Below, one piece after another: positions 22,710 to 29,476 of a stretch of DNA of 64,000 nt (the first letter of the stretch is position 1; the number at the start of each line of letters is the position of its first letter). Source of the DNA: Haliotis cracherodii (taxonomy: Eukaryota). The stretch is taken from contig NW_027266264.1 in assembly GCF_022045235.1 (NCBI RefSeq), positions 66,526,001 through 66,590,000 on the forward strand. Direction: 5' to 3'. The notes beneath the pieces were generated by a model. That model did no database searches, was not told the DNA's origin, and was given only the letters and a program-made list of their open reading frames with translations. The translations under genes and the position numbers were made by a program.

Positions 22710-25700
22710 ATGTGGAAACTGATAACACTTCTGTGCATACTTCTTCTTTCATGCGTTTCATTTACATTGACCCGAGAAGATGATGCTGAAGAAGTTGAAG
22801 AAGAAATGTAAGAATTCATTTGATTCCGTCATCCTGATTTCGGTTAGACAAGTCCTAACAGGCCTAGGTCTCTTATTTACCGTACTATACGTATATAACA
22901 GATTATAGATGTGCTTAGTTAGATGGAAAATATGGAAACAATCGATATTGCTTGTTGTTGCATAAGGGGACCGACTTTCCTTGCGATATCATTCTCAGAT
23001 CATGACATGATGAACTATACCGTCAATGATGAACAATTTAGCACACACATAGATGAGCAAGGTGTTATTGCCGTTAATTTGTTCACTACTGTACAATTTG
23101 TAATATTTTGTTCACTTTGATGGTTAGGGCTTCATCTGTGAGGTCATGAGAGACCATGTGGCTAGGAGGGATAACTCTCAAATGGCGTTTCTTGCATTTT
23201 CTTGTATGGATAGTTTGAAATAAGTTTAACTTTATGAACATTTGTTTCCGTTTCCTATCATTTTAATTTATGGTTTTAATAATGCAGTCACTTAATGCTT
23301 ATTATAATTTCAGTTTAATTGTTTTAATTGATCGTAAATTTAAGAGATCCTAATTTGCATGACCTAGTACCCATTTCAAGTCTTGGTGTAGACACATACG
23401 CCATGTGAGAAACTGAGTAGGTATAAAATATCTTTGTGCACTTTTGCAGGGATGCAACATTCTCTGAAACCCCATTTGCTTGCCTGATTAGTGATAACAT
23501 ATGGGGACTCTTCTCAAAATGTTCAAATTCTATTAGATGTCAGGATGCATCAGTCAAACTGACTCCAGCTTGTGGGATATTGCCAATTTTCATTCCAGAT
23601 TATGGAATAACTATTAGTGAGTAGTGATCTACATCATTACATGTGAGTTAACAGCAAAAGCAGGTTTAACAACTCATAAGTACATTGCAAGTTATTCCAT
23701 GGCAATTTATTGGCTATTGATATAAACCAACCAAAAAATCAAGCCACTTTCAGCGGTAGAAACTAGTAGTTTTCATCTACTTGTCCTTATAATGATAACA
23801 TATAGCAAAACCCTTCAAAAGGGCCAATTTCTACTAGTCCTAATGATACCTTAACTATTGGGCAGTTTGGCAAGGACTATAGTCTATAGGACTAGTGCCA
23901 ATTTCTAACACTGCACTTTATAGCTTTAATAATTGCTTGGATGCTAAATAACCAAGAACTTCTACTAGCCTAAATAGTTATAACTTACAGCAATACCCCA
24001 AAATGTTTGAAATTCTGCTACCCCTTAGGATACCTTTAACAATACCCAAAATCGAATACATTACCTCTATTACATCATACATTCACATATTATCCACTTA
24101 TTTAGTTTGCCTGAATTCAAAATTCACTTGTACAGGGCATCGGGCAATAGGATTTTTTAACATCTGAAGTAGTCATAACTCATATGTTTCTGCTATGACA
24201 ACTCCATTTACCATTTTGTATACAGGTTTTTTGCTAGGAATGACTTTGTGATTCTATTTCAGGAAAAAGATGAATCGTCTGAAGAAATTATTGAACCAGA
24301 TATCAAAAAAATTGAATTCTTCAAAAGAGGCTCACAAAAGGAATGAACAAAAGAGAAGGCCGAAAGGTGTGGGCAAGTTTTATCTCTATGTAACCATGCC
24401 TGGAATAGACAAGTTAGAACCATTAGGCCCTGTAGCTCACCTGCATTTGTCTGGAATATTTGAATCATAAAATTATTATACATCAGCTTTTTACAAAGTG
24501 TACACAATATTACAAGATGAGTTGCTACACAACAAACAAACTTGCATATTGACATTATGCGATAAGAAAGTCATTCGCCTGTCAATGATAGCAGCCATAG
24601 CCTATTTGAATGTCAAAGGTCAGAAGAGAAGACAGAAAGGTGTGGGCAAATTTTATCTCTATGGATAGTCAAAGGTCAGAGTAAGAAAATCTTCTCTCAT
24701 AGGCTAAAAGAAAATCGAAATCATGGTTTTCAGGCACTGCCCGCATGAGCATGTTTCGTTTTTATTTCAATTTTCATAAAAATAAAATATTCCAAATACT
24801 TAATAACAGTGCAGGGGGCACAGGTGGCCCAGTCATCTGAGGTGCGCAATTCCCTGTGCAGAGTTGCGTCCCTTGGGGACGCCCGAAACCTATGGTTTTG
24901 GGTTCGAATCCCAGTTCGCCCCGATTATATTTCTAGGTTTGTCAGCACCATACCCGTGCTCGTGGGTTTCACCAAAGTGGTAAACGTCTAAGACCTACAT
25001 CACTTCATACTTTCCTCCCACATCAAGCTGACACGCCGTGATATAACTGGAATACTGTTAATAGCGAAGTTAAACCCAACTCACTCATTCAGAGTCACTA
25101 AAAACAATGAGATTCAATATAGCACATCTCCTGTTTATGCAAGGAGGCTCTTTCCAAGTTGATGGTACACAACTGTTTATTTGGTTACATACTACTTTTG
25201 AACAAGCAAAAAAAACCAACAAAAAAAACCGCCGCACTATATTTTCAAAAGTCATTGCCAGAGTACCAATTCTTATGTATTTTTTTAAAGCCATATCAAC
25301 AAACTTTTACAATAACGACATTTGCAGTGATGACTAACCGATGAGCAAGAAATGTTCAATATGGCTGCACTGTAAGCTACATAATGTCAGTGGTCATAGT
25401 AGGGTAAAAAGGTTTAAATATACCAAAGTATGGTATGTTATCAGCATTACTGCATGTCAAAGTTCATTTACTATTCTGGCCATGTTTATTCAAATCAGAA
25501 TTCTTTTCTAATTTCAAAGAAAGCAATGCATCATTGGCTTTGTGGTTTCAGAGGAGATAGTGACAGTGTAACATCTTAAGTCAGACAACTGTCAATACAC
25601 ACAACAACTTGCGCTCTCATATTACTTAAGTTCACATGAGGTGAAAAATACCACTTACCCAAGTCTAAAACTGCAAGTTGGGTAATGGCTGGAGATCATC

Positions 25701-28700: not shown

Positions 28701-29476
28701 AAAGCCTTTCTATTCGTAAGAAAACTATGTGTTTTCAAATTTGCCTGAGGCAGAAATTTCAAATGTTAAGACATTGATATCACCTGCAAACAAATTGTTT
28801 CTCTTCAGTTTGACTACCTATATTCCGGTATATTATCTTTCTTCCAGATCATGTGAAAAAGCACAACCAGTATGACCAATATAATTCTGGTTATGATGAA
28901 TCAAAAGATGATGATAAGGAAGATGACCTTAGGTCAATAAAAGGCAAATCAAAAAGGAAAGATGATGATGATAAGGAAGATGACCTCAGATCAAGAAAAG
29001 GCAAATCAAAAAGGAAAGATGATGATGATAAGGAAGATGACCTCAGATCAAGAAAAGGCAAATCAAAAAGGAAAGATGATGAAGATGACCTTAGGTCAAG
29101 AAAAGGCAAATCAAAAAGGAAAGATGATGATGATAAGGAAGATGACCTCAGATCAAGAAAAGGCAAATCAAAAAGGAAAGATGATGATGATAAGGAAGAT
29201 GACCTCAGATCAAGAAAAGGCAAATCAAAAAGGAAAGATGATGATGATAAGGAAGATGACCTCAGATCAAGAAAAGGCAAATCAAAAAGGAAAGATGATG
29301 AAGATGACCTTAGGTCAAGAAAAGGCAAATCAAAAAGGAAAGATGATGATGATAAGGAAGATGACCTCAGATCAAGAAAAGGCAAATCAAAAAGGAAAGA
29401 TGATGATGATAAGGAAGATGACCTCAGATCAAGAAAAGCAAATCAAAACATTGACAGTTTTGAACTTGAAACCTGA
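22710..29476 (+). CDS. Secreted low-complexity protein (~463 aa): signal peptide, Lys/Ser-rich region, tandem basic/acidic repeats
   Basis: Exons: 22710-22807 (MWKLITLLCILLLSCVSFTLT-REDDAEEVEEE, signal-peptide-like; gtaaga donor), 24263-24366 (KKMNRLKKLL...RRPK), 26022-26582 (K/S-rich, CAAG|gtgggt donor; unspliced frame stops at 26671), 28848-29476 (repeats, TGA). Phases 2/1/1 all match with GT-AG introns. Confidence 0.7.
23777..23885 (+). repeat. Dispersed repeat, second copy at ~13328-13432
   Basis: ACTTGTCCTTATAATGATAACATA…ACCTTAACTA…GGGCAGT is shared. Confidence 0.6.
28903..29449 (+). repeat. Coding minisatellite of 57-bp and 48-bp units
   Basis: Units encode KGKSKRKDDDDKEDDLRSR (19 aa) or KGKSKRKDDEDDLRSR (16 aa). 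Order is partial, L, L, S, L, L, L, S, L, L. Copies are nearly identical. Confidence 0.95.

Follow-up and report, generated by a model that had tools for sequence, protein, structure and literature searches.

The window analysed here is the whole 64,000-nucleotide stretch of Haliotis cracherodii DNA (contig NW_027266264.1, positions 66,526,001 to 66,590,000, forward strand), and all positions are numbered from its first letter. Its subject is a charged-repeat locus that is a genuine, transcribed orphan gene of no known family. On the best reading the gene has three exons (Table 1), the last running to about 30000, and this gene model gives a product of more than 400 residues that is net basic overall. 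An initial annotation, made from the sequence, had described a signal-peptide-like N-terminus, a short acidic patch, about 220 amino acids (aa) of basic K/S/G-rich sequence and about ten alternating charged blocks as parts of one secreted protein. When the sequence was re-read all of these pieces were found where that annotation had placed them, and it was partly confirmed: the observation is real, and that the pieces form a single chain we infer. By kind, the protein so modelled is a further lineage-specific, repetitive, low-complexity secreted mollusc protein with unusually regular acidic and basic blocks.

The ATG at 22710 in exon 1 opens the peptide MWKLITLLCILLLSCVSFTLT, followed by REDDAEEVEEE, in a frame that continues up to the GTAAGA donor at 22808; these are the signal-peptide-like start and the acidic patch of the initial annotation. 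The hydrophobic core, LITLLCILLL (mean hydropathy 3.36), is preceded by K3 and followed by S/C/V/S/T. A screen of the window's ATG-led open stretches (30 codons or longer) asked for three things: a positively charged n-region, a 10-residue core free of charge whose mean hydropathy is 3.0 or more, and small residues at -1/-3 (our own criteria, not SignalP). The open reading frame (ORF) at 22710 alone passed (1 of 582). The n-region, core, small residues at -3/-1 and N-terminal position of a classical signal peptide were all found in it. AUG codons follow one another in the RNA at 22685 (an upstream ORF of 2 codons), 22710, 22751 (10 codons) and 22780, and 22710 is the first AUG to open a frame of any length, 37 bases 3' of the RNA 5' end. 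Because it is the first substantial AUG and begins a textbook signal peptide, and because the alternative start is the fourth AUG, 22710 was taken as the start of the main ORF, with a predicted cleavable signal peptide.

Exon 2 lies within a long open frame (26006-26671) and is stop-free over 187 codons in the exon and 221 in the genome. Translation from 26030 gives a peptide of 184 residues (30 K, 12 R, 33 S, 14 G; net +29) that lacks Cys; with exon 1 included the length is ~216 residues, in agreement with the basic, Cys-free region of about 220 aa described initially. An open stretch of at least 187 codons occurred somewhere in 16 of 200 simulated 64-kb sequences, and the chance that such a stretch would match a transcribed exon exactly is much smaller still. 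The last base of exon 2 opens a codon completed by 2 bases of exon 3, a phase that leads into the sole exon 3 frame open from the acceptor onward.

The exon 3 peptide comprises 208 residues (58 D, 48 K, 28 R, 13 E), of which 71% are charged, with 76 K+R set against 71 D+E and a net charge of +5. Its repeat units encode LRSRKGKSKRK followed either by DDDDKEDD (19 aa) or by DDEDD (16 aa). Nine full units (seven of 19 aa, two of 16 aa), a leading acidic block and a degenerate last unit make up 10 acidic and 10 basic blocks, so that the description of about ten alternating blocks of balanced charge held. Two forward frames and one reverse frame are open across the array. The unit variants CTT/CTC and AGG/AGA (CTTAGG versus CTCAGA) are synonymous in the frame that encodes the D/K blocks and change residues in the other open frame; the remaining differences between units are one I/R change and the 9-base indels that produce the length variants. 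Blocky charge patterning, also claimed initially, was measured by the parameter kappa, which was 0.234 for the repeat part and exceeded every one of 200 shuffles (mean 0.101, standard deviation 0.031, maximum 0.189). For the whole of exon 3 kappa was 0.237 against a shuffle mean of 0.117 and maximum of 0.247, a value reached by at least 1 of 200 shuffles. Sequence charge decoration was not unusual, because the blocks are short. A single-sequence AlphaFold2 model contained no helix or strand, at a mean predicted local distance difference test score of 48.5; this absence of a predicted fold agrees with a disordered chain and is weak evidence of disorder.

Table 1. Features of the charged-repeat locus, in window coordinates; a slash marks an exon-intron boundary.
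Feature	Position	Strand	Remarks
Putative promoter element, perfect palindrome TGACGTCA	22591-22598	+	Upstream of RNA 5' end
Putative promoter element, one-off copy TGACGTCG	22611-22618	+	One mismatch to TGACGTCA
GATAAA	22647-22652	+	~25 bases upstream of RNA 5' end
Exon 1	22673..22807	+	RNA 5' end ~22673; 32 codons + 2 bases; donor AAAT/GTAAGA at 22808
Intron 1	22808..26021 (or ..26028 with distal AG)	+	Donor GTAAGA; two candidate AGs
Inverted repeat, left arms	24846..25086	.	Partners 27067-27306; flank exon 2
Exon 2	26022..26582 (or from 26029)	+	561 bases (187 x 3) or 554; donor CAAG/GTGGGT
Intron 2 (inferred)	26583..28847	+	Acceptor tatctttcttccag/AT; codon split 1+2
Inverted repeat, right arms	27067..27306	.	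In intron 2
Exon 3, coding part	28848..29476	+	Y/N/Q-containing lead-in, polyampholyte array, stop TGA 29474-29476; behind strong acceptor tatctttcttccag
57-bp tandem repeat, 9.8 copies	28907..29448	+	219-bp higher-order unit, 98% matches
Possible polyadenylation signal AATAAA	29978..29983	+	First after stop, ~500 bases downstream; another at 30319

A run search listed 22 sequencing runs, none of them on record as RNA, and runs X1, X2, X3 and X7 were compared with positions 22560-28559. Each of the four is a set of contigs with about 3-4% of letters unlike the window, which marks the sources as related organisms or divergent populations. In run X3 (organism B) a contig of 137 letters, at depth 496.5, aligns to 22673-22777, and the 27 letters before this match we take to be Illumina adapter. 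Adapter standing directly before 22673 indicates that many fragments end there, and this position was read as the 5' end of the RNA. Over exon 2 the X3 depth in successive 200-base bins was 1177, 1516 and 2552, and then fell to 118 and 3.8. It was 34-42 in the last 420 bases of intron 1, 0-4 in the other unique parts of that intron and 1.4-6.3 in the unique parts of intron 2, and exons 1 and 2 were covered 30-70 times intron depth. Run X2 (organism A, a different study) gave an exon 2 contig of depth 253.6 with a 51-letter second piece from 26532 that would end at 26582; together with the fall in depth and a joint in X3 described below, it points to an exon 2 donor at 26582. Exon 2 was thus seen in two of the four runs and exon 1 in one, and X1 reaches 26050 only inside an intron-spanning contig. 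Transcription of the exons, on which the initial annotation depended, was borne out for exons 1 and 2 in related organisms; the part not confirmed was their joining, since among the joints listed for the four runs no contig connects exon 1 with exon 2 or exon 2 with exon 3.

Three further observations were made on these contigs. The X2 contig skips 78 letters (26453 to 26532), and an in-frame deletion was considered and is not claimed, as the letters between are not known. In intron 1, 37 bases present in the window (25782-25818) are missing from the X1 and X3 contigs, which pass from 25781 directly to 25819. The introns also hold very high-copy interspersed repeats (23760-23960, 24760-25360 and 26960-27760). 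In each of the four runs their contig depths sum to 10^4 to 3x10^5, with numerous spurious joints from one repeat to another, and no Rfam family was found in them.

It was considered whether the locus might be not one gene at all but three unrelated ORFs, with the repeat ORF a by-product of a purine-rich minisatellite. Any stop-free repeat unit makes long ORFs, the array is open in three frames as noted above, and the transcript comparison stops short of exon 3, which begins at 28848. A purine-rich simple sequence elsewhere in the genome (L002, G000:C2:4139695-4143076) matches the repeat exon at 67% identity across ~400 bases; no frame of it is free of stops, and on that ground it was rejected as a possible paralogue. 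Against this account, X3 covers exons 1 and 2 together and no other unique segment in the interval separating them; the donor of exon 2 is in use, and the strong acceptor before exon 3 has the matching phase. The differences between repeat units also fall out as synonymous in the D/K frame. We consider it very improbable that the ORFs are unrelated.

Relatives of the predicted protein were sought exon by exon throughout. Neither the exon 2 nor the exon 3 peptide matched a Pfam family at E values up to 1. A phmmer search with the exon 2 peptide against 1.84 billion protein representatives returned no match at E ≤0.001, and a word-indexed protein search with the exon 3 peptide, in which 8000 candidates (proteins of 114-364 aa) were scored, likewise returned none at E ≤0.001. 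The ESM Atlas gave no usable match for either exon, and no Rfam family reached its gathering score within 22000-30500. In the animal's own genome (1.18 Gb, 80 contigs) the exon 2 peptide, searched at E up to 1, and the exon 1 DNA recovered the locus itself only, so the gene is single copy. The 11-residue repeat motif was not found in literature text, and the available passages of the shell-matrix, secretome and mantle literature describe no mollusc or Haliotis protein of such design, though sequence supplements may hold one. The claim that the protein is lineage-specific and belongs to no named family is upheld by these blanks.

The X3 contigs include a joint, at depth 984.8, that leads from 26583 back to 26025 with two letters between. 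Flanking inverted repeats are the usual setting for back-splicing, and here both a joint from the exon's donor to its own acceptor and reverse-complementary repeats on either side were found; the inverted arms are 120 and 117 nucleotides long and 79-80% complementary (about 240 bases in total). On the simplest reading, exon 2 yields a candidate abundant circular RNA in the related organism. A tandem duplication of exon 2 in organism B would give the same joint.

From these results we tentatively favour, with somewhat less than even confidence, a single-copy, lineage-restricted and fast-evolving gene for a secreted, disordered polyampholyte that would condense electrostatically. Secretion depends on the end of intron 1, where two AGs stand 7 bases apart (ttatacag/GTGACAG/AAAG, slashes marking the two possible boundaries). 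The coding part of exon 1 is 98 bases long and ends 2 bases into a codon. With the distal AG (exon start 26029) the signal-peptide frame stays open into exon 2, and the initial annotation evidently used this site, the one that keeps that frame, in its spliced model. Which of the two AGs is used determines whether the product is a secreted protein or stops short at 33 codons, and the signal peptide and secretion, as predicted from the sequence, hinge on use of the distal acceptor.

A number of observations weigh against a secreted product. The frame of exon 1 is kept only via the distal AG, and by the usual splice-site rules the better site is the proximal AG (26022), with its pyrimidine tract and its G at +1. 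Splicing there puts a TGA right after the junction codon and ends the 22710 ORF after 33 codons. The sole acceptor junction seen, the X3 back-joint, retains ACAG before AAAG and so shows use of the proximal site; the claim of secretion stood as to its convincing signal-peptide-like start and was not supported by the junction seen. The contig ends near this point (X1 at 26050, X3 at ~26023) were not used as clues to the acceptor, being ambiguous and equally well explained by nearby variants. The context of ATG 22710 is weak (T at -3 and +4). To these points are added the lack of an exon-joining contig, the absence of exon contigs from X1 and X7 (two of the four runs), the position of exon 3 outside the range compared, and the failure of the protein collections searched to contain anything resembling exon 2 or exon 3. 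Nor is exon 2 conserved any better than the introns: its contigs differ from the window by 5 of 129 and 5 of 90 letters (3.9-5.6%), and intron contigs differ at 22/701, 12/436, 17/585, 10/232 and 26/696 letters (2.8-4.3%), with no sign of purifying selection. Divergence in an exon that is not below that of the introns is compatible with a non-coding RNA as well as with a low-complexity protein that evolves fast.

A rival account is that the gene is real and its signal-peptide exon is out of frame in this animal. The locus would then give mainly mRNA that is not productive, together with abundant circles of exon 2 RNA, and would be decaying or essentially non-coding. The proximal AG is the better site and is used by the deep X3 back-joint, inverted repeats lie on both sides of the 561-base exon, the depth of exon 2 in X3 is 2- to 6-fold that of exon 1, and divergence is as high in the exon as in the introns. 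The X3 exon 1 contig, moreover, ends its alignment at 22777, just before the acidic patch, and the length of exon 1 may therefore vary between organisms. On the other side, it is unlikely that a non-coding exon would be free of stops for 187 codons and in phase with the sole open frame of exon 3. The repeat variants are synonymous or keep the frame, the AG that restores the frame is only 7 bases off, and a textbook signal peptide, the only one of the 582 stretches screened to pass, stands at the first real AUG. On balance an out-of-frame, largely non-coding gene appears unlikely, if far from negligible.

Use of the proximal acceptor can also be reconciled with translation if the start is moved. 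The exon 2 frame then extends back to ATG 22780 (MMLKKLKKK...), is open from there through 26022, and would give a wholly charged protein of ~405 residues without a signal peptide, in which the ten K/R blocks act as nuclear signals, as in a protein of chromatin, nucleolar or sperm-nuclear basic type. ATG 22780 has an A at -3 and the context at 22710 is weak, and leaky scanning is possible; the acceptor that this protein needs is the one used in X3. Blocks of the KRK type resemble classical nuclear signals, and nucleolar and chromatin proteins carry alternating acidic and basic stretches, K/R clusters, disorder and Ser-rich acidic clusters, and have no signal peptide. The protein predicted here differs from them in that its acidic blocks consist of D, E and K only, without the serines typical of nucleolar acidic clusters, and in the signal-peptide-like start ahead of it, which on this account would be a coincidence. 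ATG 22780 is in addition the fourth AUG, after 22685, 22710 and 22751, and two upstream ORFs overlap it. A start at 22780 is in our judgement distinctly unlikely.

The palindrome and its one-off copy listed in Table 1 stand 55-82 bases ahead of the observed RNA 5' end; copies of this type may be cAMP-response (cyclic adenosine monophosphate-response) elements, and the GATAAA may be a TATA-like box. The window has six perfect copies of the palindrome against 0.81 expected, and none of 100 shuffles reached six. The other five lie at 2661, 2849, 38598, 39998 and 44325, some of them in or beside retroelements. The interval 33532-39078 (+) holds ORFs of 1053 and 675 aa with DUF1759, reverse transcriptase, Pao retrotransposon peptidase, integrase and DUF5641 domains, and by these domains is a BEL/Pao-type long terminal repeat retrotransposon with a largely open coding region. 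A GC-rich block at 40534-43483 (-) (0.54, against about 0.38 around it) contains overlapping minus-strand ORFs, one of which matches reverse transcriptase; for another, of 409 aa, Pfam gave no match, and the block resembles a retroelement with broken frames. An ORF of 401 aa at 18106-19311 (-) has no Pfam match at E ≤0.001.

On the favoured reading, that of a secreted polyampholyte, the ORF from 22710 would encode a signal peptide, an acidic patch, a 184-residue K/S-rich domain of charge +29 and ten alternating blocks, acidic (DDDDKEDD) and basic (LRSRKGKSKRK), whose charges nearly cancel. Such a strong polyampholyte would be intrinsically disordered and would pass into the secretory pathway. 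Inside a secretory vesicle, where ionic strength is low, its oppositely charged blocks may pair between chains, and with counter-charged cargo or Ca2+, to form a dense, salt-sensitive condensate that would loosen once released into sea water or extrapallial fluid; the protein may in this way carry counter-charged cargo or a mineral precursor. Vesicle condensation, salt-triggered release and cargo carriage are proposed by analogy with Pif80, and the biomineral, adhesive or coacervate role suggested in the initial annotation is a guess.

Pif80 appears to be the nearest functional analogue, and is the mollusc precedent for what had been supposed initially: its charged repeats are balanced, and it does form coacervates and exert control over CaCO3. 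By its published description, Pif80 is the C-terminal cleavage product of the pearl oyster nacre protein Pif, the recombinant form has a calculated isoelectric point of 5.14, its charged repeats are well balanced, and its coacervation is electrostatic, induced by Ca2+ and reversed by salt (PMC5540247). The likeness lies in a mollusc protein of the secretory pathway with no recognisable domain, repetitive and nearly balanced charge, and disorder, all of which are here predicted from sequence; Pif80 differs, on the same description, in being net acidic and cut from a large precursor with Pif97 domains (PMC5540247). The balanced, repetitive charge is present in exon 3, as the counts and kappa value above show. 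At this locus there is no Pfam domain in exons 2-3 and exon 1 has just 32 codons, so the gene encodes no precursor of the Pif97 type, and a +29 basic domain precedes near-perfect 19-residue units; the two proteins were compared by description, not by sequence. The Pif97 domains in question are the von Willebrand A and chitin-binding domains, and Pif80 is further marked by binding to aragonite.

A second analogue comes from abalone sperm, where FITZAP (sp6), a disordered poly-Asp protein, packages its partners of opposite charge, lysin and sp18, in salt-sensitive complexes and is trimmed by furin and carboxypeptidase B, as its description reports (PMC6952181). The predicted protein would share with it an abalone-specific, rapidly evolving, disordered and secreted character and runs of poly-Asp. 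FITZAP is encoded as ~6 kDa and 3-4 kDa when mature, has two exons, is net anionic (-6 to -16) and carries an N-terminal poly-Asp run with a hydrophobic lysin-binding stretch behind it, by the same description (PMC6952181), whereas the gene described here has three exons and more than 400 codons, with +29 in exon 2, +5 in exon 3 and neutral block repeats. FITZAP, as a 6-kDa anionic two-exon peptide, was for this reason rejected as the identity of the locus and kept as an analogue only. Contig C7 of the same genome carries, within 60 kb, four exon matches to Egg_lysin (PF01303) that exceed the curated cut-off (L005-L008, G000:C7:25189171-25250896), with none in 14 control genomes; these are presumably the lysin and sp18 genes, and they are on a different contig from the charged-repeat gene.

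Processing of the repeat into peptides was considered as a more elaborate form of the same proposal. KR pairs and [KR]-x-[KR]-R motifs each number 9 in exon 3, where R-x-[KR]-R does not occur; exon 2 has none of them. The KR in each of the nine repeat units could be a proprotein convertase site that yields small zwitterionic peptides. Compared with prohormone precursors, the units have no hydrophobic or aromatic core and no Gly directly before the KR pair. On this reading the gene would encode an abalone-specific secreted polyprotein from which convertase cuts at KR free about nine zwitterionic poly-Asp peptides of 16-19 residues and the +29 K/S-rich domain; these would serve in the salt-switched packaging of charged cargo, such as acrosomal lysin and sp18, or of mineral precursors, as a multi-copy counterpart of the FITZ complexes, with exon 2 also released as an abundant circular RNA. 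The combination, taken as one, is very unlikely.

The favoured secreted polyampholyte has its wider setting in the mantle and shell secretomes of molluscs. These likewise include proteins with signal peptides, restricted to single lineages, built of tandem low-complexity repeats and evolving fast (PMC2989941, PMC6003135; see also PMC1676022, PMC4897951). The types named there are Gln-, Met-, Gly-, Ala- or Asp-rich or basic Ser-rich, and alternating acidic and basic blocks are not described in the passages available (PMC2989941, PMC6003135). If it is made and secreted, the protein would be a natural and genetically simple block polyampholyte, with a +29 head followed by ten near-identical acidic/basic units, in an animal whose nacre and whose sperm-packaging chemistry are both models of charge-driven condensation. 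It would then be well suited to testing how extracellular coacervation depends on block length and salt, and would be a new and unrelated addition to the fast-evolving mollusc secretome.

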